From: Macrostomum lignano
Taxonomy: Eukaryota
DNA length: 29,470 nucleotides
Reading direction: 5' to 3'
Assembly: GCA_002269645.1 (NCBI GenBank)
Contig: NIVC01004984.1
Coordinates: forward strand, 1-29,470
This document shows positions 1 to 24,687 of this stretch, in pieces. The stretch's first letter is position 1. Each line of letters begins with the position of its first letter. The notes under the pieces are model-generated. The model had not been told where the DNA came from, ran no database searches, and saw only the letters and a list, made by a program, of their open reading frames with translations. Both the position numbers and the translations under genes were made by a program.

Positions 1-3000
1 TGTAAAAAAATCAAGAAGCGTCATGTAAAAAATCATAGAAGCGTCATGCGTAAAAATCATAGAAGCGTCATGTAAACAATCATAGAAGCGGTCATGTAAA
101 AAATCATATAGAAGCGTCATGTAAACAATCATAGAAGCGTCATGTAAAAATCATAGAAGCGTCATGTAAAAATCATAGAAGCGTCCATGTAAACAATCAT
201 AGAAGCGTCATGTAAAAATATAAGCGTCATGTAAAAATCATAGAAGCGTCATGTAAACAATCATGAAGCGTCATGTAAAAAATCATAGAAGCGTCATGTA
301 AAAAATCATAGAAGCGTCATGTAAACAATCATAGAAGCGTCATGTAAAAATCATAAGCGTCATGTAAAAATTCATAGAAGCGTCATGTAAAAATATAGAG
401 CGTCATGTAAAAAATCATAGAAGCGTCATGTAAAACAATCATAGAAGCGTCATGTAAAATAAGCGTCATGTAAATCATAGAAGCGTCATGTAAAAAATCA
501 TAGAAGCGTCATGTAAAAATCATAGAAGCGTCATGTAAAAAGCATAGAAGCGTCATGTAAAAAATCATAGAAGCGTCATGTAAAAATCATAGAAGCGTCA
601 TGTAAACAATCATAGAAGCGTCATGTAAAAATCATAGAAGCGTCATGTAAACATCATAGAAGCGTCATGTAAACAACATAGAAGCGTCATGTAAAAAATC
701 AAGAAGCGTCATGTAAAAATCATAGAAGCGTCATGTAAAAATCATAGAAGCGTCATGTAAAAATCATAGAAGCGTCATGTAAAAATCATAGAAGCGTCAT
801 GTAAAAATCATAGAAGCGTCATGTAAACAATCATAGAAGCGTCATGTAAAATATAAGCGTCATGTAAAAACGCCTAGAAGCGTCATGTAAACAATCATAG
901 AAGCGTCATGTAAAAAATCATAGAAGCGTCATGAAAAAATCATAGAAGCGTCATGTAAACAATCATAGAAGCGTCATGTAAAAATATAAGCGTCCATGTA
1001 AAAATCATAGAAGCGTTATGTAAAAAATCATAGAAGCGTCATGTAAAAATCATAGAAGCGTCATGTAAAATCATAGAAGCGTCATGTAAAAAATCATAGA
1101 AGCGTCATGTAAAAATCATAGAAGCGTCATGTAAAAATCAGAAGCGTCATGTAAACATCATAGAAGCGTCATGTAAACAATCATAGAAGCGTCATGTAAA
1201 AAATCATAGAAGCGTCATATAAAAACATCATAGAAGCGTCATGTAAACAATCATAGAAGCGTCATGTAAAAAATCATAGAAGCGTCATGTAAAATCATAG
1301 AGCGTCATGTAAAAACATAGAAGCGTCATGTAAACAATCATAGAAGCGTCATGTAAAAATCATAGAAGCGTCATGTAAAAAATCATAGAATCGTCATGTA
1401 AAAAATATAGAAGCGTCATGTAAAAACCATAGAAGCGTCATGTAAACAATCATAGAAGCGTCATGTAAACAATCATAGAAGCGTCATGTAAAAATCATAG
1501 AAGCGTCATGTAAAAATCATAGAAGCGTCATGTAAAAAATCATAGAAGCGTCATGTAAAAATCATAGAAGCGTCATATAAAATCATAGAAGCGTCATGTA
1601 AACAATCATAGAAGCGTCATGTAACATCATAGAAGCGTCATATAAACAATCATAGAAGCGTCATGTAAACAACATAGAAGCGTCATGTAAACAATCATAG
1701 AAGCGTCATGTAAAAATCATAGAAGCGTCATGTAAAAAATCATAGAAGCGTCATGTAAACAATCATAGAAGCGTCATGTAAACAATCATAAAAGCGTCAT
1801 GTAAAAAATCATAGAAGCGTCATGTAAACAATCATAGAAGCGTCATGTAAAAATCAAGAAGCGTCATATAAAAAGCATAGAAACGTCATGTAAACAATCA
1901 TAGAAGCGTCATATAAAAATCATAGAAGCGTCATGTAAAAATCATAGAAGCGTCATGTAAAAATCATAGAAGCGTCATGTAAAAATCATAGAAGCGTCAT
2001 GTAAAAATCATAGAAGCGTCATGTAAACAATCATAGAAGCGTCATGTAAAAAATCATAAAAGCGTCATGTAAAAAATCATAGAAGCGTCATGTAAAAAAT
2101 CATAGAAGCGTCATGTAAACAATCATAGAAGCGTCATGTAAACAATCATAGAAGCGTCATGTAAAAATCATAGAAGCGTCATGTAAAATCATAGAAGCGT
2201 CATGTAAAAAATCGTAGAAGCGTCATGTAAAAATCATAGAAGCGTCATAAACAATCATAGAAGCGTCATGTAAACAATCATAGAAGCGTCATGTAAAAAT
2301 CATAGAAGCGTCATGCAGAAAATCATAGAAGCGTCATGAAACAATCATAGAAGCGTCATGTAAAAAGCATAGAAGCGTCATGTAAAAAATCATAGAAGCG
2401 TCATATAAACAATCATAGAAGCGTCATGTAAAAAATCTAGAAGCGTCATGTAAAAATCATAGAAGCGTCATATAAACAATCATAGAAGCGTCATGTAAAC
2501 AATCATAGAAGCGTCATGTAAACAATCATAGAAGCGTCATGAAAAATCATAGAAGCGTCATGTAAAAGCATAGAAGCGTCATGTAAAAATCATAGAAGCG
2601 TCATGTAAACAATCATAGAAGCGTCATGTAAAAAATCATAGAAGCGTCATGTAAAAATCATAGAAGCGTCATGTAAAAAATAGAAGCGTCATGTAAACAA
2701 TCATAGAAGCGTCATGTAAACAATCATAGAAGCGTCATGTAAAAAATCATAGAAGCGTCATGTAAAAAATCATAGAAGCGTCATGTAAAAATCTAGAAGC
2801 GTCATGTAAAAATCATAGAAGCGTCATGTAAACAATCATAGAAGCGTCATGTAAAAATCATAGAAGCGTCATGTAAACAATCATAGAAGCGTCATGTAAA
2901 AATCATAGAAGCGTCATGTAAAAACATAGAAGCGTCATGTAAAAATCATAGAAGCGTCATGTAAACAATCATAGAAGCGTCATGTAAAAATCATAAAAGC

Positions 3001-6000
3001 GTATGTAAAAATCATAGAAGCGTCATGTAAAAATCTTAGAAGCGTCATGTAAAAATCATAGAAGCGTCATGTAAAAAATCATAGAAGCGTCATGTAAACA
3101 ATCATAGAAGCGTCATGTAAAAAATCATAGAAGCGTCATGTAAAAAATCATAGAAGCGTCATGTAAAAATTATAGAAGCGTCATATAAACAGTCATAGAA
3201 GCGTCATGTAAAAAATCTTAGAAGCGTCATGTAAAAATATAGAAGCTCATATAAACAATCATAGAAGCGTCATGTAAACAATCATAGAAGCGTCATGTAA
3301 AACAATCATAGAAGCGTCATGCAAATCGTAGAAGCGTCATGAAAAAATCATAGAAGCGTCATGTAAAAATCATAGAAGCGTCATGTAAAAAACATAGAAG
3401 CGTCATGTAAACAATCATAGAAGCGTCATGTAAAAATCATAGAAGCGTCATGTAAAAATCATAGAAGCGTCATGTAAACAATCATAGAAGCGTCATGTAA
3501 AAATCATAGAAGCGTCATGTAAAAATCATAGAAGCGTCATGTAAACAATCATAGAAGCGTCATGTAAAAAATCATAGAAGCGTCATAAAAATCATAGAAG
3601 CGTCATGTAAAAATCATAGAAGCGTCATGTAAAAACATAAAGCGTCATGTAAAAATCATAGAAGCGTCATTAAAAATCATAGAAGCGTCATGTAAAAAAT
3701 CATAGAAGCGTCATGTAAAAAATCATAAAGCGTCATGTAAAAAATCATAGAAGCGTCATGTAAAAAATCATAGAAGCGTCATGTAAAAATCATAGAAGCG
3801 TCATATAAACATCATAGAAGCGTCATGTAAAAAATCATAGAAGCGTCATGTAAAAATCATAGAAGCGTCATGTAAAAATCATAGAAGCGTCATGTAAAAA
3901 TCATAGAAGCGTCATGTAAAAATCATAGAAGCGTCGTAAAATCATAGAAGCGTCATGTAAAAATCATAGAAGCGTCATGTAAACATAGAAGCGTCATGTA
4001 AAAATCATAGAAGCGTCATGTAAAATCATAGAAGCGTCATGTAAAAATCATAGAAGCGTCATGTAAAATCATAGAAGCGTCATATAAAAATCATAGAAGC
4101 GTCATGTAAACAATCATAGAAGCGTCATGTAAACAATCATAGAAGCGTCATGTAAAAATCATAGAAGCGTCATGTAAAAATCATAGAAGCGTCCTGTAAA
4201 AATCATAGAAGCGTCATGTAAAAAATCATAGAAGCGTCATGTAAACAATCATAGAAGCGTCATGTAAACAATCATAAAGCGTTATGTAAAAAATCATAGA
4301 AGCGTCATGTAAACAATCATAGAAGCGTCATGTAAAAATCAAGAAGCGTCATGTAAAAACATAGAAGCGTCATGTAAACAATCATAGAAGCGTCATGTAA
4401 AAAATCATAGAAGCGTCATGTAAACAATCATAGAAGCGTCATGTAAAAATCATAGAAGCGTCATGTAAAAATCATAGAAGCGTCATGTAAAAATCATAGA
4501 AGCGTCATGTAAACAATCATAGAAGCGTCATGTAAAAAATCATAAAGCGTCATGTAAAAAATCATAGAACGTCATGTAAAAAATCATAGAAGCGTCATGT
4601 AAACAATCATAGAAGCGTCATGTAAAAAATCATAGAAGCGTCATGTAAAAATCATAGAAAGCGTCATGTAAAAATCATAGAAGCGTCATGTAAAAAATCA
4701 TAGAAGCGTCATGTAAAAATCATAGAAGCGTCATGTAAAAATCATAGAAGCGTCATGTAAACAATCATAGAAGCGTCATGTAAAAATCATAGAAGCGTCA
4801 TGCAAAATCATAGAAGCGTCATGTAAAAATCATAGAAGCGTCATGTAAAAACATAGAAGCGTCATGTAAAAATCATAGAAGCGTCATGTAACAATCATAG
4901 AAGCGTCATGTAAAAAATCATAGAAGCGTCATGTAAAAATCATAGAAGCGTCATGTAAACAATCATAGAAGCGTCATGTAAACAATCATAGAAGCGTCAT
5001 GTAAACAATCATAGAAGCGTCATGTAAAAATCATAGAAGCGTCATGTAAAAAGCATAGAAGCGTCATGTAAAAATCATAGAAGCGTCATGTAAACAATCA
5101 TAGAAGCGTCATGTAAAAATCATAAAGCGTTATGTAAAAATCATAGAAGCGTCATGTAAAAAATCATAGAAGCGTCATGTAAAAATCATAGAAGCGTCAT
5201 GTAAACAATCATAGAAGCGTCATGTAAAAAATCATAAAGCGTTATGTAAAAATCATAGAAGCGTCATGTAAAAAATCTTAGAAGCGTCATGTAAAAATTA
5301 TAGAAGCGTCATATAAACAATCATAGAAGCGTCATGTAAAAAATCATAGAAGCGTCATGTAAACAATCGTAGAAGCGTCATGTAAAAATCATAGAAGCGT
5401 CATGTAAAAACATAGAAGCGTCATGTAAAAATCATAGAAGCGTCATGTAAACAATCATAGAAGCGTCATGTAAAAATCATAGAAGCGTCATGTAAAAAAT
5501 CATAGAAGCGTCATGTAAAAATCTAGAAGCGTCATGTAAACAATCATAGAAGCGTCATGTAAACAATCATAGAAGCGTCATGTAAAAAATCATAAAGCGT
5601 TATGTAAAAAATCATAGAAGCGTCATGTAAAAAATCTTAGAAGCGTCATGTAAAAATTATAGAAGCGTCATATAAACAATCATAGAAGCGTCATGTAAAA
5701 AATCTAGAAGCGTCATGTAAAAATCATAGAAGCGTCATATAAAAAATCATAGAAGCGTCATGTAAAAATCATAGAAGCGTCATGTAAAAATCATAGAAGC
5801 GTCTGCAAAAATCGTAGAAGCGTCATGTAAAAATCATAGAAGCGTCATGTAAAAACATAGAAGCGTCATGTAAAAAATCATAGAAGCGTCATATAAACAA
5901 TCATAGAAGCGTCATGTAAAAAATCTTAGAAGCGTCATGTAAAAATCATAGAAGCGTCATGTAAACAATCATAGAAGCGTCATGTAAACAATCATAGAAG

Positions 6001-9000
6001 CGTCATGTAAACAATCATAGAAGCGTCATGTAAACAATCATAGAAGCGTCATGTAAAAATCATAGAAGCGTCCTGCAGAAATCGTAGAAGCGTCATGAAA
6101 AATCATAGAAGCGTCATGTAAAAAGCATAGAAGCGTCATGTAAAAAATCATAGAAGCGTCATATAAAAATCATAGAAGCGTCATGTAAACAATCATAGAA
6201 GCGTCATGTAAACAATCATAGAAGCGTCATGTAAAAATATAAGCGTCATGTAAAAACATAGAAGCGTCATGTAAACAATCATAGAAGCGTCATGTAAAAA
6301 ATCATAGAAGCGTCATGAAAAAATCATAGAAGCGTCATGTAAACAATCATAGAAGCGTCATGTAAAAATCAAACAAGCGTCATGTAAAAAATCATAGAAG
6401 CATCATGTAAAAATCATAGAAGCGTCATGTAAAAATCATAGAAGCGTCATGTAAAAAATCATAGAAGCGTCATGTAAACATCATAGAAGCGTCATGTAAA
6501 CAATCATAGAAGCGTCATGTAAAAATCATAGAAGCGTCATGTAAACAATCATAGAAGCGTCATGTAAAAATCATAGCGTCATGTAAAAACCATAGAAGCG
6601 TCATGTAAACAATCATAGAAGCGTCATGTAAAAAATCATAGAAGCGTCATGAAAAATCATAGAAGCGTCATGTAAACAATCATAGAAGCGTCATGTAAAA
6701 ATATAAGCGTCATGTAAAAATCATAGAAGCGTCATGTAAAAATCATAGAAGCGTCATGTAAAAATCATAGAAGCGTCATGTAAAAATCATAGAAGCGTCA
6801 TGTAAAAATATAAGCGTCATGTAAAAATCATAGAAGCGTCATGTAAAAATCATAGAAGCGTCATGTAAAAATCATAGAAGCGTCATCTAAAAAGCATAGA
6901 AGCGTCATGTAAAAAATCATAGAAGCGTCATGTAAAAAATATAAGCGTCATGTAAAAACCATAGAAGCGTCATGTAAACAATCATAGAAGCGTCATGTAA
7001 ACAATCATAGAAGCGTCATGTAAAAAATCATAGAAGCGTCATATAAACATCATAGAAGCGTCATGTAAAAATCAAGAAGCGTCATGTAAACAATCATAGA
7101 AGCGTCATGTAAAAATCATAAAGCGTCATGTAAAAATATAAGCGTCATGTAAAAACCATAGAAGCGTCATGTAAACAATCATAGAAGCGTCATGTAAACA
7201 ATCATAGAAGCGTCATGTAAAAATATAAGCGTCATGTAAAAACCATAGAAGCGTCATGTAAACAATCATAGAAGCGTCATGTAAAAAATCATAGAAGCGT
7301 CATGAAAAAATCATAGAAGCGTCATGTAAAAAATCATAAAAGCGTCATGTAAAAATCATAGAAGCGTCATGTAAAAATCATAGAAGCGTCATGTAAAAAA
7401 TCATAGAAGCGTCATGTAAAAATCATAGAAGCGTCATGTAAAAATCATAGAAGCGTCATATAAACATCATAGAAGCGTCATGTAAACAATCATAGAAGCG
7501 TCATGTAAAAAAATCATAGAAGCGTCATATAAACATCATAGAAGCGTCATGTAAACAATCAAAGAAGCGTCATGTAAACAATCATAGAAGCGTCATGTAA
7601 AAATATAAGCGTCATGTAAAAACCCATAGAAGCGTCATGTAAACAATCATAGAAGCGTCGTGTAAACAATCATAGAAGCGTCATGTAAAAATCATAGAAG
7701 CGTCATGTAAAAATCAAAGAAGCGTCATGTAAAAAATCATAGAAGCGTCATGTAAAAATTATAGAATCGTCATATAAACATCATAGAAGCGTCATGTAAA
7801 CAATCATAGAAGCATCATATAAACATCATAGAAGCGTCATGTAAACAACCATAGAAGCGTCATGTAAAAATCAAAGAAGCGTCATGTAAAAAATCATAGA
7901 AGCGTCATGTAAACAATCATAGAAGCGTCGTGTAAACAATCATAAAAAAGCGTTATGTAAAAAATCATAGAAGCGTCATGTAAACAATCATAGAAGCGTC
8001 ATGTAAAAAATCGAAGAAGCGTCATATAAAAAGCATAGAAACGTCATATAAACAATCATAGAAGCGTCATATAAAAAATCATAGAAGCGTCATGTAAAAA
8101 TCATAGTAGCGTCATGTAAAAAATCATAGAAGCGTCATGTAAACAATCATAGAAGCGTCATATAAACAATCATAGAAGCGTCATCTAAAAAGCATAGAAG
8201 CGTCATGTAAACAATCATAGAAGCGTCATGGAAAAAGCATAGAAGCGTCATGTAAACAATCATAGAAGCGTCATATAAACAATCATAGAAGCGTCATCTA
8301 AAAAGCATAGAAGCGTCATGTAAACAATCATAGAAGCGTCATGGAAAAAGCATAGAAGCGTCATGTAGACAATCATAGAAGCGTCGTGTAAACAATCATA
8401 GAAGCGTCATGTAAAAATCATAGAAGCGTCATGTAAAAATCAAAGAAGCGTCATGTAAAAAATCATAGAAGCGTCATGTAAAAATTATAGAATCGTCATA
8501 TAAACATCATAGAAGCGTCATGTAAACAATCATAGAAGCATCATATAAACATCATAGAAGCGTCATGTAAACAACCATAGAAGCGTCATGTAAAAATCAA
8601 AGAAGCGTCATGTAAAAAATCATAGAAGCGTCATGTAAACAATCATAGAAGCGTCGTGTAAACAATCATAAAAAAGCGTCATATAAAAAAGCATAGAAAC
8701 GTCATATAAACAATCATAGAAGCGTCATGTAAAAAATCGAAGAAGCGTCATATAAAAAGCATAGAAACGTCATATAAACAATCATAGAAGCGTCATATAA
8801 AAAATCATAGAAGCGTCATGTAAAAATCATAGTAGCGTCATGTAAAAAATCATAGAAGCGTCGTGTAAACAATCATAGAAGCGTCATATAAACAATCATA
8901 GAAGCGTCATCTAAAAAGCATAGAAGCGTCATGTAAACAATCATAGAAGCGTCATGGAAAAAGCATAGAAGCGTCATGTAAACAATCATAGAAGCGTCAT

Positions 9001-9322
9001 ATAAACAATCATAGAAGCGTCATCTAAAAAGCATAGAAGCGTCATGTAAACAATCATAGAAGCGTCATGGAAAAAGCATAGAAGCGTCATGTAGACAATC
9101 ATAGAAGCGTCATGTAAAAAATCATAGAAGCGTCATGTAAAAATCATAGAAGCGTCATGTAAACAATCATGGAAGCGTCATGTAAAAAAATCATAGAAGC
9201 GTCATGTAAAGAGCATAGAAGCGTCATATAAACAATCATAGAAGCGTCATATTAAAAATCATAGAAGCATCATGTAAAAATCATAGAAGCGTCATGAAAA
9301 ATCATAGAAGCCTCATTTAAAG
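1..9322. repeat. Satellite DNA array, ~22-bp monomer (consensus AGAAGCGTCATGTAAAAATCAT; variants AAACAATC and AAAAAATC give 21-23 bp), roughly 410-420 copies; runs off the left edge of the window
   Basis: The monomer is directly visible throughout; it decays after ~9300 with remnants to ~9415. Much of the variation is A-run length, which may partly be long-read error. Confidence 0.98.
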
Positions 9323-9519
9323 ACTAATGAAAGTGTCAGTTAAAAAAATTAAGAAGCATCATGGTAGAATAAAAGAAGCGTCATGTCAGACATGAAGGTG
9401 TCATGTAAAAATTAAATGCAGTTATAATGCTGTGCTGGGGAGAAAAACTGAGACGTAAAGGCTCTCAGAGAATAACTGAGATTACGGGGGGGGGTGGTTC
9501 TGAGATGTCAAAGCAAAAG

Positions 9520-10560
9520 TCAGAAGCTACTTCAAAGTTCATGTACTTTACTCAATTTTTTAATTACATTCTTTGTTGGCTCGCCACGGGGGGAGGCGCT
9601 GATAGAAGAAGAGTCATGTAAAAAATAAAAGTAGCACTAAGTATACATAAAAGAAAGGTCATGTCGAAGTCAAAAGATTCATTTGGGAATTGCTACGATG
9701 TCAAAGCTTGGTGGAAATCGTTATAGTGCTGTGATTCTTAAAGAAGGAATCACTAAAATGCCAAGGCTTAGGGGAGAAGAATTGCTGAGATTTCAAGGCT
9801 TTAGGTTGGGTTAAAGTTAGGTTTAGGTCAGGTGTGGGTTGAGGGTTATATTTTATCGGGTTTCAAGGTTAACAGGGGATTTTTTAGATTTCAAGGTTTA
9901 TGGGGGCCATCGCTGACATGTCAAGGCTTACGGGGGGGAATAGCTGAGATGTCAAGGCTTACGGGGGGGAATAGCTGAGATGTCAGGGCTCACTGGGGTA
10001 TAAATGAGATTTCAAGGCTAAAGCCAGAAGCTACATGTAGTTTATTGAAAACTTTTTATTACATTATTTGATGCCTCCTCAGGGGAGGGATCGCTGATAA
10101 AAAAAGCGTAATGTAAAAATAAAAGAAGCTTCATGTCGAAGTTAAGAGATTCATTTGGGAATCCCTACGATATCGAGGCTTGCAGGGAATCGCAATAATG
10201 CTGTAGTAGTGCTATTATGACTCTTAGAGAGAATTACTGAAATTTCAATGCTTTAGGGTTAGGTTAGGGTTAGGGTTAGGGTTAGGGTTAGGGCTAGGGT
10301 TAGGCTAGGGTTAGGGTTAGGGTTAGGTTTGGATTAGGGTTAGAAGGTTGACAGATATTTTTAGATTTTCAAGGCTTATTGGGGGCATTGCTGAGATGTC
10401 AGGGGGGGGAGTTGATATGTTAAAGCTTGTGGGGGGAATTACTGACATGTCAAGGCTTACAAGGTTTGACAGGAGATTTTTTAAGATTTCAAGGATACAT
10501 GTAGCTTATTAAAAAACGTGTATTGCATTTCTTTGGCTCCCCAACGGGGGGCGTAGATTG
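9520..10560. repeat. Degenerate tandem duplication, period ~500 bp (about 2 copies plus the start of a third), each copy with a satellite-like motif, a TTAGGG-like tract and ~30-bp GCTGAGATGTCAAGGCTTACGGGGGGGAATA sub-repeats
   Basis: Paired landmarks: CAGAAGCTAC (~9521 and ~10025); TCATGTCGAAGT.AA.AGATTCATTTGGGAAT (~9659 and ~10131); degenerate vs intact TTAGGG tract (~9801 and 10253). TACATGTAG.TTATT recurs at ~10031 and ~10496. Confidence 0.75.
10253..10343 (+). repeat. Interstitial telomere-like tract (TTAGGG)n, ~15 units of which 9 are perfect
   Basis: TTAGGG units interspersed with TTAGG and CTAGGG variants; non-telomeric sequence on both sides. Confidence 0.9.

Positions 10561-10623: not shown

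Positions 10624-10625
<2 letters not shown>
10594..10625 (-). mobile_element. Solo terminal inverted repeat of a mariner-like DNA transposon, ending at a TA dinucleotide
   Basis: The reverse complement reads TA-CGAGGGGTGATCAAAAAGTTCTGCAACC, resembling irritans-subfamily mariner ends (Hsmar2-type TA-CGAGGGGTCTTCAAAAAGTTC, recalled from memory). No partner TIR or transposase ORF seen. Confidence 0.5.
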
Positions 10626-12281
<1,656 letters not shown>

Positions 12282-12515: not shown

Positions 12516-12790
12516 GTAATCAGTTTTATTACCCTGTTTATTTGTCAGCGGCTCCAATTATCTGAGTTATTCTCCAAGCCGGTCATAATTTGGGCTTCTC
12601 CTTTTTATCTGATCTCCAAGCAGATTGACTTCAAGCGACAGAGTCAATAGAGCAATCGGGTCGAGCACTCAACTTCCTGGTATTAGCGCAGCATAGCTTG
12701 AAAAAATAAGATAAATAAAGACGACGGAGAGTCTCAACACACCGACTCTGTCTCTTATACTCACATAAAACTTTACCCTTACCTATTCAG
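12516..12790 (+). other. Probable 5'UTR intron of the neuropeptide gene
   Basis: Donor CAG|GTAATC at 12516 and a strong acceptor CTTTACCCTTACCTATTCAG| ending at 12790, 38 nt before the ATG. A non-coding first exon is typical of vertebrate NPY genes. Confidence 0.5.
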
Positions 12791-12828
12791 CAAGTCTGAA
12801 ACAGCAGCCAGCCAACCCTGACTCTGCA

Positions 12829-13997
12829 ATGGCCCCTAGCAACTCCTTTGTGTCCTGTAAGCACCCGGCAGCTCAGTTGCTTCTGCCGATGCTGCTGCTG
12901 CTGCTGCTGCTCCCAGTCTGCCTGCGGCAGGGCGGGGCGGTGGCCGCCTTCCGAGTCGAGGCCGAGGCCGACTATCCCGACTCCGATCTGGCTGGCATCG
13001 ACGATCTGCTGGTGAAAAAGCGTCTGGCAGCGGCCGACCACAGCAACTTGGACTCGCTCAAGTTCCGCCTGATCGAGGCGGGAAAGCTGCCGGCGGCCGC
13101 CACGGACGAGGATGTGGCGAGATACGTGCAGCAGATTGTGCAGATGGTGAATAGGCCGAGGTAAATCTTTTTCCACGATTTTTATAGCGTTTACTGGTTC
13201 GTGTCTAACAGGTACATTGAAAACAAAAAAGTTTTCATTACTTCATTTGGGTTGAGTACACTGACTGGTTGAGTACACTGACTAGTTGAGTACACTGACT
13301 AGTTGAGTACACTGACTAGTTGAGTACACTGACTAGTTGAGCACACTGACTAGTTGAGTATACTGACTAGTTGAGTACACTGACTAGTTGAGTACACTGA
13401 CTAGTTGAGTACACTGACTAGTTGAGTACACTGACTGGTTGAGTACACTGACTAGTTGAGTACACACTGATTGGTTGAGTACACTGAATAGTTAAGTAGA
13501 CTGAGTGACTGGTTGAGTACATTGGCTGGTTGAGTACATTGGCTGGTTGAGTACATTGGCTGGTTGAGTACATTGACTGGTTGAGTACATTGACTGGTTG
13601 AGTACATTGGCTGGTTGAGTACATTGGCTGGTTGAGTACATTGGCTGGTTGAGTACATTGACTGGTTGAGTACATTGACTGGTTGAGTACATTGACTGGT
13701 TGAGTACATTGACTGGTTGAGTACATTGACTGGTTGAGTACATTGACTGGTTGAGTACATTGGCTGGTTGAGTAGACTGCAGTTTATGGAGCTCCATTGC
13801 GTAAAATTTTATTTGGGTGCAGCATCCGTAAAGATAAATTACATTCAGGACATGCAAAAACTCTTAGGCATGGTAGGAGAAGCTTAGAGATCTGTGAGGA
13901 TGAAATTTGCAATGAGGTGCCATCAATCAACCTTTATCGTTTCAGGTACGGCAGAAGCGTCGACAAGCAGACAGCCTGGCACTCCAAACGACTTTAA
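12829..13997 (+). CDS. npy/npf-like: Neuropeptide Y/F (NPY/NPF) family precursor, join(12829..13160,13946..13997), 127 aa; predicted peptide ends ...EDVARYVQQIVQMVNRPRY-amide (G-R amidation/cleavage site)
   Basis: Hydrophobic signal peptide (LLLPMLLLLLLLPVCL) and a KKR site. The ORF ends RPR at AG|GTAAAT (13160/13161); acceptor CCTTTATCGTTTCAG|G (13945/13946) continues in phase 2 as R-Y-G-R-SVDKQTAWHSKRL*. A phase-2 intron inside the penultimate Arg codon is the hallmark of NPY/NPF genes. EDVARY resembles EDMARY of human NPY. Confidence 0.88.
13250..13774. repeat. 17-bp minisatellite (GTTGAGTACACTGACTA, then GTTGAGTACATTGRCTG), ~30 copies, inside the NPY intron
   Basis: Directly visible; two variant domains separated by a short irregular junction at ~13490-13515. 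Confidence 0.97.
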
Positions 13998-14116
13998 AGA
14001 CGAATTCGTCAGGATGCGCCAGAATGACTCCATCAATTCAATGACTCGATAAAAATTAAAACAAAATTTTCAATCTATCCAAGACCTGAGCTCCATATCC
14101 AGCTGAAACTGATAGC

Positions 14117-14122
14117 AATAAA
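14117..14122 (+). promoter_or_regulatory. Candidate polyadenylation signal of the NPY-like gene
   Basis: AATAAA ~120 nt after the stop codon; an ATTAAA also lies at 14055-14060. Confidence 0.45.
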
Positions 14123-14974: not shown

Positions 14975-15457
14975 CTGAGTACACTGGCTGGCTGAGTACA
15001 CTGGCCGGTTGAGTACACTGGCTGGCTGAGTACACTGGCCCGTTGAGTACACTGGCTGGCTGAGTACACTGGCCGGTTGAGTACACTGGCTGGCTGAGTA
15101 CACTGGCCGGTTGAGTACACTGGCTGGCTGAGTACACTGGCCGGTTGAGTACACTGGCTGGCTGAGTACACTGGCCGGTTGAGTACACTGGCTGGCTGAG
15201 TACACTGGCCGGTTGAGTACACTGGCTGGCTGAGTACACTGGCTGGCTGAGTACACTGGCTGGCTGAGTACACTGGCAGGCTTAGTACACTGGCCGGTTG
15301 AGTACACTGGCCGGTTGAGTACACTGGCCGGTTGAGTACACTGGCCGGTTGAGTACACTGGCCGGTTGAGTACACTGGCCGGTTGAGTACACTGGCCGGT
15401 TGAGTACACTGGCTGGCTGAGTACACTGGCCGGTTGAGTACACTGGCCGGTTGAGTA
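14975..15457. repeat. 17-bp minisatellite (GAGTACACTGGCCGGTT / GAGTACACTGGCTGGCT), ~28 copies, same family as 13250-13774
   Basis: Directly visible; the two variants alternate as a 34-bp dimer in the left half and form homogeneous runs in the right half. Confidence 0.97.
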
Positions 15458-17157: not shown

Positions 17158-18464
17158 ATGACCAACCAGTCTAGCGAGTCCGCCAACGACTTGACAGATG
17201 AATCGAAGCACAACATCAACATGAGCTTCTACTTCACTCTGTGCCATCGAATGGCCGAGCTGGAGCCCATGCTGGTTGAGTTCTACTCCAAGCTGCTGCG
17301 TCAGCTAGGCCTTCTGAACAGTGCAAATCAGATGATTAACGACTCTGAGCAGACACTCACCGAGGAACTGCTGCGGAGCGTCGTCAACTCCAAAGAGGAC
17401 GTCGCAGAGGGCGTTGAATTCCCTCTGTTCCGCGGCGCCTACATCCGGCTGTTTGAGGACGGGTCCCTGTTCCAGAGGATCATGTTCGAAGTGTTCGACG
17501 CCCTGGGTGAAGCCAGGTTGATCTGGATTCGATGGTGAGGAGCGAGCGTTGAGATTTGGGATACCCGATTGTCGATACCCGATTGCCGATACCCTATTGC
17601 CGATACCCGATTACCGATACCCGATTGCCGAAAATCGATTGCCGAAACCCGATTGCCGATACCCGATTGCCGATACCCGATTGACGATACCCGGTTTCCG
17701 ATACCCGATTGCCGATACCAGATCGCCGATACCCAATTGCCGATACCAGATTATCGATACCCGATTGCCGATACCACATTACCGATACCCGATTGCCGAT
17801 ACCACATTACCGATACCAGATTATCGATGCCCGATTGCCGATACCTCATTATCGATACCCGATTACCGATACCCGGTTCCCGATACCCGATTGCCGAAAC
17901 CCGGTTCCCGATACCCGATTGCCGATACCCGGTTCCCGATACCCGATTGCCGATACCATATCGCCGATACCCAAATCTTATCCGGATTTCCACCTCCAAT
18001 TACCCAACACGCTTTACAGGTATTCGGAATACAAGCTCAAAAACAAATCCAATCCAAAGTTGCGCACATTCTATCGCTTCATCGACTACAGCTTCATCTC
18101 GCAGCTTCCCCTGCATCACTACACGGCATTCCAGGCTGACACCCTGCTGTACTGCGAGTGGCGCTGCGCCCACCCCAACCTGATCGGCTTCCATCTGCTC
18201 ATCCTCGCCTGGATGCTCGACGCCCGCGAGTTTTTCCAGTTCGCCCCGGCCGGAATCCAACAGGCCGACCCGCTGCGGAGCCCCCTGCTGCGCAGCTTCT
18301 GGCCGATGGCCGGCCAGCCCCGGATCCGCCTACTGCCTTCGGCCAAATCGCCCACAGAGGCAGCTCCGCCGTCGAGGCCGCCGCCGCGGTCGCCAGCAAA
18401 GACGCCGAGGCTGGAGGGCCGGACCGATAAACGGGCGCGGCTGGCGACCAAGAAGTCGGCCTAG
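17158..18464 (+). CDS. Hypothetical protein, paralogue A, join(17158..17534,18020..18464), 273 aa; Pro/basic C-terminal tail
   Basis: Donor TG|GTGAGG (17535) and acceptor CGCTTTACAG|G (18019/18020) join in phase 2 (..WIR-W-YSEYKL..). GC-rich codon-like composition; homologous to the gene at 19609-20789 in both exons. Confidence 0.85.
17560..17977. repeat. 14-bp minisatellite CCGATACCCGATTG, ~30 copies, filling the intron of paralogue A
   Basis: Directly visible, with variants (CCGGTTCC, CCACATTA, CCAGATTA). Confidence 0.96.
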
Positions 18465-19608: not shown

Positions 19609-20789
19609 ATGGAGCAGCAGGACCGGGACAAGTTTATAGGTTTCTATTTGTCACTCAGGGAGAGACAGGACGATCTCGATTATGTGATGTGGCAGTTCTT
19701 CACCCAGCTCCTCGCTGCTCTCAGGGACTACCAACAGAAGCAACTGGGCGGTAGTCAAGGCCGAGTGTCTAAAAGTCTCCTCATCGAGGAGGTGGCCCAG
19801 ACCAACTTGAGCGTGAAAATCAACATGCAAAGTTTTACAGACGACTTCGTTCTGTTCCGCGGTGCCTATATTAAAACCTTTCAGGATGGATCTGTGCCCT
19901 ACAAAATACTGCACCTAATCATCGAAGCTCTGGGTGACAGCGCAGAGCCGTTGAAGGCCAAGTGAGTGTGCTGGAGTTGGAGGCTGGAGTGAAATTGGAA
20001 CTGAGTGACACTGGGACTGAGTGAGACTGGGACTGAGTGACACTGAGACTGAGTGACACTGAGACTGAGTGACACTGAGACTGAGTGACACTGAGACTGA
20101 GTGACACTGAGACTGAGTGACACTGGGACTGAGTGACACTGGGACTGAGTGACACTGGGACTGAGTGACACTGAGACTGAGTGACACTGGGACTGAGTGA
20201 CACTGGGACTGAGTGACACTGGGACTGAGTGACACTGGGACTGAGTGACACTGGGACTGACTGACACTGGGACTGAGTGACACTGGGACTGACTGACACT
20301 GGACTGGTTACTGCTTGAAGCTCAAGTGACTTGAAACAAAAATATATATTCAAATATTTAAGATCGAAAAGTACATTGAAAGTTGGGCAGCCAATTTGTC
20401 TCCAATTCAGAGTGCACCAGTTCGAATCCGAGGGCAAGAGCCTGCCGATGCTGCGCGCATTCTACTGGTACGTGGACGTGAACTTCATTTCGCAGCTGCC
20501 AACAGAGTTCCAGGTGGCGTTCACCGTTGACTGCCTGCTGTACGGAGAGTGGCGCATCGACCACCCGAACCTGGTCGGCCTGAACCTGCTGGCCCTGGCC
20601 TGGATGCTGGGCGAGGCCCAGTTTCACCGCTTCCTGCCCGACGGCATGAAGGACTGCCAGCCGGTGAAGAGGCCGATTTTTAAGCAGCTGCTGCCGCTGG
20701 TCGGCATTCGAGTTCGGTACAACGACAATGCCACTAAGTCCGGTCAGCAGCTGAAGGGTCAGGATAGTCAGCAGAAAAACGGGAAATAA
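19609..20789 (+). CDS. Hypothetical protein, paralogue B, join(19609..19961,20411..20789), 243 aa
   Basis: Consensus donor AA|GTGAGT (19962) and acceptor CTCCAATTCAG|A (20410/20411) join in phase 2 (..PLKA-K-VHQFES..). Shares LFRGAYI..F.DGS, FISQLP, LLY.EWR..HPNL.G and LAWML with paralogue A; AATAAA at 20862. Confidence 0.87.
20001..20305. repeat. 16-bp minisatellite CTGAGTGACACTG(G/A)GA, ~19 copies, in the intron of paralogue B
   Basis: Directly visible. Confidence 0.97.
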
Positions 20790-22069: not shown

Positions 22070-22560
22070 GGGGTTGGGGCTAAGCCACGCAGGGCTGAGG
22101 GTGGGGCCTAGCCACGCAGGGCTGGGGCTGGGGGGGCCTAGCCACACATGGCTGGGGGCTGGGGGTGGGGCCTAGCCACACATGGCTGGGGCTGGGGGTG
22201 GGGCCTAGCCACACATGGCTGGGGCTGGGGGTGGGGCCTAGCCACGCAGGCCTGGGGGCTGGGGTGGGGCCTAGCCACGCAGGCCTGGGGGCTGGGAACT
22301 GGGGGTGGGGCCTAGCCACACAGGGCTGGGGGCTGGGGTGGGGCCTAGCCACGCAGGCCTGGGGGCTGGGAACTGGGGGTGGGGCCTAGCCACACATGGC
22401 TGGGGGCTGGGGGTGGGGCCTAGCCACGCAGGCCTGGGGGCTGGGGGTGGGGCCTAGCCACGCAGGCCTGGGGGCTGGGAACTGGGGGTGGGGCCTAGCC
22501 ACACAGGGCTGGGGGCTGGGGGTGATGGCTAATCCACGCAGGCCTGGGGGCTGGGGGAGG
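22070..22560. repeat. G-rich minisatellite anchored on GGGGCCTAGCCAC, ~14 units of variable length (~27-42 bp)
   Basis: Directly visible; several G4-G6 runs per unit on the + strand. Confidence 0.93.

Positions 22561-22857: not shown

Positions 22858-24687
<1,830 letters not shown>

Follow-up and report, generated by a model that had tools for sequence, protein, structure and literature searches.

Does contig NIVC01004984.1 of the flatworm Macrostomum lignano (assembly GCA_002269645.1) carry a gene of the family of neuropeptides Y and F (NPY/NPF), and, if so, how far does the encoded precursor depart from the family norm? The question was raised by a first-pass annotation of the 29,470-nt stretch covering positions 1 to 29,470 of this contig (hereafter, the window), which was based on the letters of the DNA alone and proposed an atypical, divergent NPY-family ligand around positions 12829-13997. 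We find there a two-exon gene on the forward strand, the spliced coding sequence of which (384 nt) translates into a 127-aa secretory precursor (Table 1). This gene probably encodes a secreted prohormone of the NPY/NPF family; it is a strongly diverged member of an already known hormone family and does not define a novel signalling system. The core of the proposal, an NPY/NPF-type prohormone gene, is borne out by RPRY-Gly followed by a basic site, by a phase-2 intron and by the GRSVDKQTA tail, while its atypicality was overstated.

The position of the only coding intron is the first feature that links the gene to the family. The intron separates the second from the third base of the last Arg codon of the peptide (phase 2, RPR/Y; slashes mark exon boundaries), with the donor AG/GTAAAT at 13160/13161 and the acceptor TTTATCGTTTCAG/G at 13945/13946, that is, AG/GTAAAT ... 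TTTCAG/G. A phase-2 intron in the last Arg codon is a hallmark of NPY/NPF genes across Bilateria, including vertebrates, molluscs, annelids, arthropods and nematodes (Yanez-Guerra 2020; Kim 2021, PMC8536682), and is carried by ten planarian npy genes (Collins 2010, PMC2953531). With only 7 AG/G protosplice-like sites in the coding sequence, the chance of finding an intron at the family position is approximately 1 in 7 in the most conservative view and approximately 1 in 380 in the uniform view.

In the protein, the family signal resides in a 15-residue module that extends across this intron (MVNRPR/YGRSVDK versus IVGRPRF-GRSVNKRS of mollusc NPF precursors). The mollusc precursors were reached by a profile search followed by a second search with one of its matches. 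The first-pass annotation had suggested a hidden Markov model (HMM) search as a check, and in such a search the mollusc-type NPF HMM aligns MVNRPRYGRSVDKQT to IVGRPRFGRSvnKRS with a score of 18.7 bits, which none of 3000 shuffles of the tail reaches when RPRYG is kept fixed. An independent comparison restricted to the tails, taking the best score over 45 of them, was equalled by 45 of 5000 shuffles, and the score observed on an HMM of the planarian NPY core was reached by none of 2000 shuffles of the whole pro-region. The planarian set used here and below consists of the 11 Schmidtea mediterranea NPY-superfamily prohormones listed in Table S5 of Collins et al. 2010 (PMC2953531), ten of which were tested on Pfam. 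The match in the tail is encoded by exon 2: Y-GRSVDKQTA corresponds to the mollusc NPF tail GRSVNKRSA, and GRSVNKRS follows RPRF in the NPFs of Lottia, Patella, Haliotis, Batillaria and Mizuhopecten (GRSANKRS in Pomacea). The monobasic G-R site, previously considered atypical, is the conserved processing site of mollusc NPFs, and GRS is present in 10 of the 58 NPY-family precursors that we retrieved by similarity, a set in which divergent forms are under-sampled.

We conclude from the intron and these sequence comparisons that the gene probably descends from an NPF gene and keeps an ancestral spiralian processing module, RPR[F/Y]-G-R-S-V-[N/D]-K interrupted at the Arg by the phase-2 intron, its peptide body having diverged past profile detection. 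Sharing of the GRSV[N/D]K tail between the macrostomid and molluscs points to a feature of the ancestral spiralian NPF precursor that would have been lost in planarians. In the M. lignano gene, the peptide body would have undergone a three-residue deletion that removed the turn bearing Tyr(-10) (residues are counted from the C-terminal Tyr as 1), lost its proline arm and gained an N-terminal extension together with a spacer.

The gene model is consistent throughout the locus. The start ATG at 12829 has favourable surroundings, with G at both -3 and +4, and lies downstream of an in-frame stop at 12766. As the first-pass annotation recognised, the amidated end depends on splicing: the unspliced frame terminates immediately (AGG TAA) and yields a product ending in NRPR, whereas after splicing the precursor's C-terminal portion reads NRPR/YGRSVDKQTAWHSKRL. 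A competing acceptor was looked for, and 13946 proved to be the sole site in the 13200-14060 interval at which an AG is preceded by at least 11 pyrimidines in 15 positions. The stop codon (13995-13997) is reached within exon 2, 52 nt past the acceptor, and the C-terminal flanking region contains no further intron; a further intron in this region is typical of the NPY/NPF family, although not universal. No second NPY-like exon pair was detected in the window by tblastn and a motif scan. An antisense open reading frame (ORF; 12787-13176, minus strand, 129 aa) almost exactly covers coding exon 1; the GC-rich codons used in this exon most likely gave rise to it as a by-product.

According to the first-pass annotation, ORF-based annotation would miss the spliced end. 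The NCBI protein BOX15_Mlig001675g1 (P0001; M. lignano, 127 aa, 'hypothetical protein') is 99% identical to the precursor over its full length, the UniRef entry A0A1I8J0Q3 (P0002) is 97% identical to it, and both gene models use the 13160/13946 junction; this claim is therefore wrong. The gene is real and already predicted in databases, but unnamed. In UniRef, copies P0002 and P0003 carry the names 'RxLR effector protein' and 'INCENP_ARK-bind domain-containing protein', which were evidently assigned automatically and are spurious. Copy P0003 (112 aa) was considered as a sign of pseudogenisation and was not used as such, as it seems to be a model of this gene that is full of frameshifts and stems from an older assembly. 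BOX15_Mlig001675g1 itself is carried by another contig of the assembly, NIVC01001159.1 (L001), which is approximately 99.6% identical at this locus: exon 1 and the donor show no difference, one pyrimidine is changed at the acceptor, a single coding difference (TGG to CGG, W121R) is found in exon 2, and the intron (853 nt) is 68 nt (4 x 17) longer than that of the window. Use of this contig as a paralogue for exon/intron comparison was rejected, because it represents the same locus; it confirms the splice sites and gives no evolutionary signal. Searches for MVNRPRY, NRPRYG and Mlig-npf/npy found no paper in the literature covered, outside of which lie McVeigh et al. 2009 and Koziol et al. 2016, and a prior description is possible.

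The precursor has the layout MAPSNSFVSCKHPAAQLLLPMLLLLLLLPVCLRQGGAVAA / FRVEAEADYPDSDLAGIDDLLV / KKR / LAAADHSNLDSLKFRLIEAGKLPAAATDEDVARYVQQIVQMVNRPRY / G R / SVDKQTAWHSKRL. All the parts described in the first-pass annotation, namely the signal peptide, the acidic spacer of approximately 22 aa, KKR, the 47-aa segment, G-R and the short tail, are in place. The hydrophobic Leu-rich core occupies residues 17-32 and is followed by an AVAA c-region; an AlphaFold2 (AF2) model places a helix at residues 18-34. We infer that the gene is expressed and that its product is processed, amidated and recognised by a receptor, as follows. The signal peptide would come off after residue 39 or 40, as judged by the -3/-1 small-residue rule. 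A PC2-type convertase would cut after KKR (residues 63-65) and after Arg114, a predicted cleavage site that directly follows the Gly and precedes the flanking peptide (R-Y-G-R, which fits RXXR). A carboxypeptidase would then strip Arg114, and peptidylglycine alpha-amidating monooxygenase (PAM) would turn Tyr-Gly into Tyr-NH2, the Gly after the C-terminal RPRY (R-x-R-[F/Y]-Gly in the NPY/NPF family) being the predicted amide donor. The 47-aa segment ends in EDVARYVQQIVQMVNRPRY, and the peptide expected from it would have 47 residues, or fewer after possible further trimming, and the terminus QMVNRPRY-NH2; its by-products would be two further peptides, one acidic and N-terminal, the other C-terminal and 13 residues long. 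M. lignano possesses a pc2 homologue, the knock-down of which is severe (Arbore 2015). Cleavage at the internal KFR would reduce the distance to the terminal Tyr from 47 to 32 aa and is less likely, because neither P4 nor P6 is basic and P1' is a Leu. Receptor binding would fall to the amidated RPRY end, acting on an NPY/NPF-type rhodopsin G-protein-coupled receptor, as planarian NPY-8 does on NPYR-1; in planarians this pair maintains sexual maturity (Collins 2010, PMC2953531).

Assignment of the gene to the NPY/NPF family has to be weighed against contrary evidence, beginning with the silence of profile searches. Neither the precursor nor its sub-peptides match the Pfam family PF00159 (Hormone_3) at E<=10, a threshold at which all 10 planarian NPYs tested as a control are recovered (E-values from 8e-13 to 0.012, 4 of them above the gathering score). 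Likewise, none of the NPY, PYY, PP and NPF chains in the Protein Data Bank (PDB) is matched by the M. lignano peptide at E<=10 (phmmer), whereas the control, planarian NPY-5, matches the Moniezia NPF, PYY and PP chains. On an HMM of the 25-residue planarian core the precursor scores 8.2 bits with only RPRYG aligned, compared with 26-45 bits for planarian members in leave-one-out tests. When RPRYG is fixed and the sequence upstream of it shuffled, the observed score is reached in 89 of 2000 cases with the planarian HMM and in 250 of 3000 with the mollusc HMM; the helix region therefore adds no significant family signal. Finally, the protein-library searches (phmmer against 1.84 billion representative proteins and a word-indexed search of 5.8 billion proteins) returned M. 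lignano copies only, and thus no orthologue outside this species. Two weak PDB matches, of the 47-mer to the ribosomal protein bS18 (E 0.13) and of the 27-mer to the designed repeat protein THR6, which contains TEEDVARFV, were judged to be chance or generic helix matches. The likeness of EDVARY to the 'EDMARY' of vertebrate NPY is therefore not statistically meaningful.

Residue by residue, the peptide also lacks most of what characterises the family, and these differences count on the same side. Ile at -10 and Val at -17 were correctly noted in the first-pass annotation, there being no aromatic residue at -9 or -10, and the Tyr of ARY is found at -14. In register, M. lignano has Val, Val, Ile and Met/Val, respectively, where the family has Tyr(-17), Leu(-13), Tyr(-10) and Ile(-7/-6). 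The distance between ARY and RPRY had been described as three residues short, and the MAFFT alignment agrees: one 3-residue gap suffices, which removes the 'NEY' turn, brings the M. lignano Tyr to Tyr(-17) and an Ile to Leu(-13), and leaves Tyr(-10) deleted. An aromatic residue at -10/-9 is present in 57 of the 58 retrieved relatives and position -5 is G, S or A in all 58 of them, whereas the M. lignano peptide has no such aromatic and carries Asn at -5. The near-absence of the polyproline arm is equally apparent, with a single proline upstream (KLPAAAT) in place of the N-terminal proline pair of the family. The length of 47 aa (32 aa if KFR is used) lies outside the usual 36-40 aa, and the peptide is separated from the signal peptide by a 22-23-aa acidic spacer and KKR, contrary to the family norm of direct adjacency. 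As a side observation, an unannotated eukaryotic NPF precursor from an environmental assembly (ENA protein P0051; ...VKAILEKLEKDSAIAGRPRFGRS...) represents another long divergent form that, like the M. lignano peptide, is devoid of aromatics at -17 and -10/-9.

Some of these peculiarities are nevertheless shared with planarians, and the RPRY-amide, the extra acidic pro-segment and the missing arm, all presented as atypical by the first-pass annotation, have precedents in planarian NPY-3, -5, -7, -8A and -10. S. mediterranea NPY-1 to NPY-11 resemble the M. lignano gene in belonging to a flatworm, in the phase-2 intron of the last Arg codon and in the short C-terminal flanking peptide, the precursors of NPY-3 and NPY-10 being the closest. 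NPY-5, -7 and -10 end in RPRY-amide, RPRF-amide ends also occur in the set, and AIAGRPRYa has been detected by mass spectrometry; in NPY-3 an acidic spacer (NKDELDILF, detected by mass spectrometry) is followed by KKR and then by the peptide, NPY-10 has the spacer LSDYETSSFNQWYD followed by KR, and the spacer arrangement recurs in NPY-4 and NPY-8 (Collins 2010, PMC2953531). Moreover, NPY-8A, at the lower limit of planarian peptide lengths, is only 29 aa long and lacks a proline arm, and weak or missing arms occur among NPY-3, -5, -7 and -10 (Collins 2010, PMC2953531). For planarians, mass spectrometry documents the spacers with KKR or KR, the RPRY-amide and the short peptides alike. What distinguishes the planarian members is Tyr(-17) in 8 of 11, an aromatic residue at -10/-9 in 11 of 11, G, A or S at -5 and a GKR site, compared with Val(-17), Ile(-10), Asn(-5), GR-S, the 3-residue deletion and the 47-aa length in M. 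lignano. Truly unusual in the M. lignano peptide are its length of 47 aa, the Asn that it carries at -5 and the 3-residue deletion by which the turn with Tyr(-10) is lost.

The mollusc NPFs (Lottia gigantea, Patella, Haliotis, Mizuhopecten) share with the M. lignano gene the motif RPR[F/Y]-G-R-S-V-[N/D]-K-x-[S/T]-A, the intron position and a precursor with a single copy of the peptide (for abalone NPF, see Kim et al. 2021, PMC8536682). They differ from it in their length of 39 aa, their location right after the signal peptide, the PPxRP proline arm and the ELRxYLKALNEYYAIVG helix, as well as in the Phe-amide end and the presence of further exons downstream (Kim et al. 2021, PMC8536682). Vertebrate NPY, PYY and PP are similar in their Rx-R-Y-amide terminus, in the intron within the Arg codon and in a C-terminal helix that is amphipathic and leads into a flexible receptor-binding end; the M. 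lignano helix is shorter by approximately one turn, an extra pro-segment is present, and there is no polyproline helix (AF2 predicts an alpha-helix at residues 71-83 in its place). Separately, we noted an unannotated eukaryotic protein (P0011) on contig Ga0123365_1111069 (L002) of JGI metagenome 3300012394 that is a canonical mollusc-like NPF with the tail GRSVNKRSA.

Other explanations of the locus have been considered. The loss of every structural family residue except for the RPRY end would fit a relaxed or degenerating NPF paralogue that is no functional NPY-type ligand and drifts or has another role, with a canonical NPF encoded elsewhere in the M. lignano genome. Near-identical copies (P0001 and P0002) and the garbled P0003 in M. 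lignano, as well as the location of the locus in repeat-rich DNA beside satellite and TTAGGG tracts, fit this explanation, which we consider unlikely: no damage is seen in the ORF, the signal peptide, KKR, RXXR with Gly, either splice site or the poly(A) signals, none of the differences noted on comparison with the public copies lies in the C-terminal helix or the RPRY stretch, and P0003 appears to owe its state to frameshift errors of the older assembly. In addition, no canonical M. lignano NPF turned up in a profile search with the planarian NPYs and the M. lignano peptide, in which 707 candidates were scored; the matches listed were up to 88 aa long, and the search was not exhaustive.

The absence of significant likeness to any NPY-family profile upstream of RPRYG could also mean that the precursor is not derived from NPY/NPF at all and has acquired its RY-amide end convergently, belonging to the sNPF/PrRP, the luqin/RYamide or a flatworm-specific family. 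Luqin-type precursors have a conserved C-terminal Cys pair, and the M. lignano precursor has no Cys past the signal peptide (none after residue 31) and a long peptide. On similar grounds, echinoderm 'NPY-like' peptides have been reassigned to PrRP/sNPF; however, the intron of the PrRP/sNPF type is phase-1 and lies N-terminally or centrally in the peptide (Yanez-Guerra 2020), whereas the sole coding intron of the M. lignano gene is phase-2 and splits the last Arg codon. Besides, sNPF/PrRP peptides are short with an RLRF/RF-amide end, the M. lignano peptide is long and single-copy, neither short nor multi-copy, and the tail GRSVDK matches GRSVNK of mollusc NPFs. We therefore find convergence very unlikely. 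Even less probable is a small secreted protein that escapes processing to an amidated neuropeptide, its basic sites being unused or its transcript remaining in the unspliced form ending in NRPR. Read-through without splicing does stop at once, and the helix-loop-helix of the AF2 model might be a small folded domain; yet the signal peptide, KKR, RXXR-Gly and the family intron make up the standard prohormone layout, and the spliced form is the one adopted in both public gene models.

The AF2 model, built from the single sequence, reaches a mean pLDDT of 63, with 85-88 over residues 81-100 (10-residue block means). It contains helices at residues 71-83 and 93-107, connected by the loop AGKLPAAAT, and a non-helical NRPRY end; the C-terminal helix (93-107) is amphipathic (muH 0.51). 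The model is weakly consistent with a helix-loop-helix in place of the PP-fold. Macrostomorpha are the earliest-branching rhabditophoran flatworms, and it is conceivable, albeit doubtful, that the gene is the NPY/NPF orthologue of this group with a PP-fold rebuilt as a helix-loop-helix, rather than a side paralogue. Such rebuilding, which we put forward only tentatively, would have replaced the polyproline arm by an alpha-helix, shortened the C-terminal helix by one turn and eliminated Tyr(-10), with only the RPRY-amide pharmacophore and the ancestral spiralian GRSV[N/D]K tail being kept. If this is true, either the receptor reads little beyond the C-terminal end or it has co-evolved with its ligand.

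Placement of the gene among the probable NPY/NPF prohormones leaves the current picture of NPY/NPF biology unchanged. It does provide a name and a testable function for a gene so far labelled 'hypothetical protein', in a transgenic flatworm model suited for studying NPY-type signalling, which in planarians controls sexual maturation. It also offers a clean case of an NPY-family member that is invisible to profile searches and was recognised only by its gene structure and the intron-straddling processing module, which is of relevance to neuropeptide mining pipelines.

Table 1. Features of the NPY-like gene of M. lignano, in window coordinates
Feature	Position	Strand	Remarks
Coding exon 1	12829..13160	+	332 nt; residues 1-110 and first two bases of Arg111; identical in NIVC01001159.1
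Signal peptide, residues 1-39/40	12829..12948	+	n-region, Leu-rich core LLLPMLLLLLLLPVCL, c-region RQGGAVAA; by inspection
Acidic pro-segment FRVEAEADYPDSDLAGIDDLLV, residues 41-62	12949..13014	+	read from the translation; precedents in planarian NPY-3 and NPY-10
KKR, predicted prohormone-convertase site, residues 63-65	13015..13023	+	KKR also used by planarian NPY-3
Exon-1 portion, from L66 to the first two bases of Arg111, of the predicted 47-aa peptide	13024..13160	+	candidate KFR site at residues 78-80
Intron, GT...AG	13161..13945	+	785 nt; splits the Arg codon of RPR/Y; donor and acceptor conserved in NIVC01001159.1
17-bp tandem array GGTTGAGTACACTGACT	13250..13779		~31 copies; lies within the intron; the window and NIVC01001159.1 differ in copy number
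Coding exon 2	13946..13997	+	third base of Arg111, Tyr112 (13947-13949), Gly113 (13950-13952), Arg114, tail SVDKQTAWHSKRL, stop
Poly(A)-signal-like hexamers	14055..14122	+	ATTAAA at 14055, AATAAA at 14117

The DNA around the gene is rich in repeats. An A-rich 23/45-bp satellite (AAAAAATCATAGAAGCGTCATGT; ~420 copies, 89-90% matches), approximately 9.4 kb long, occupies the first third of the window (1-9412), where the GC content is 0.32 and the AT skew +0.35. A short (TTAGGG)n tract of approximately 16 copies, a telomere-like repeat inside the contig, is found at 10253-10343, and a 1.66-kb perfect (TAGT)414 microsatellite at 10624-12281 ends approximately 550 bp upstream of the NPY-like gene; the (TTAGGG)n and (TAGT)n arrangement is also present in contig NIVC01001159.1. 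Approximately 1 kb downstream of the stop codon of the gene lies a 17-bp array, TGAGTACACTGGCCGGT (14976-15457), related to the intronic GGTTGAGTACACTGACT array, and many further minisatellites with periods of 14-33 bp are scattered across 15.9-25.7 kb.

Other genes are located in the second half of the window. Two tandem paralogous copies of a gene are encoded on the plus strand (17158-17538 / 17709-18464 and 19609-19965 / 20331-20789), each split into two ORF pieces by a minisatellite; they have in common the motifs F.LFRGAYI..F.DGS and ...FISQLP...EWR..HPNL.G..LL.LAWML, and neither has a Pfam match. The first of these copies is probably the counterpart of a 141-aa gene called in contig NIVC01001159.1, the start of which lies approximately 2.8 kb downstream of the NPY-like gene. 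Further downstream, a single-exon ORF of 389 aa on the minus strand (22858-24027) encodes a GT10 alpha-1,3-fucosyltransferase (Pfam PF00852, 7.8e-49; PF17039, 9.7e-13); a G-rich 33-bp array (22070-22557) lies on one side of it and a (CTAT)55 repeat (24111-24331) on the other.

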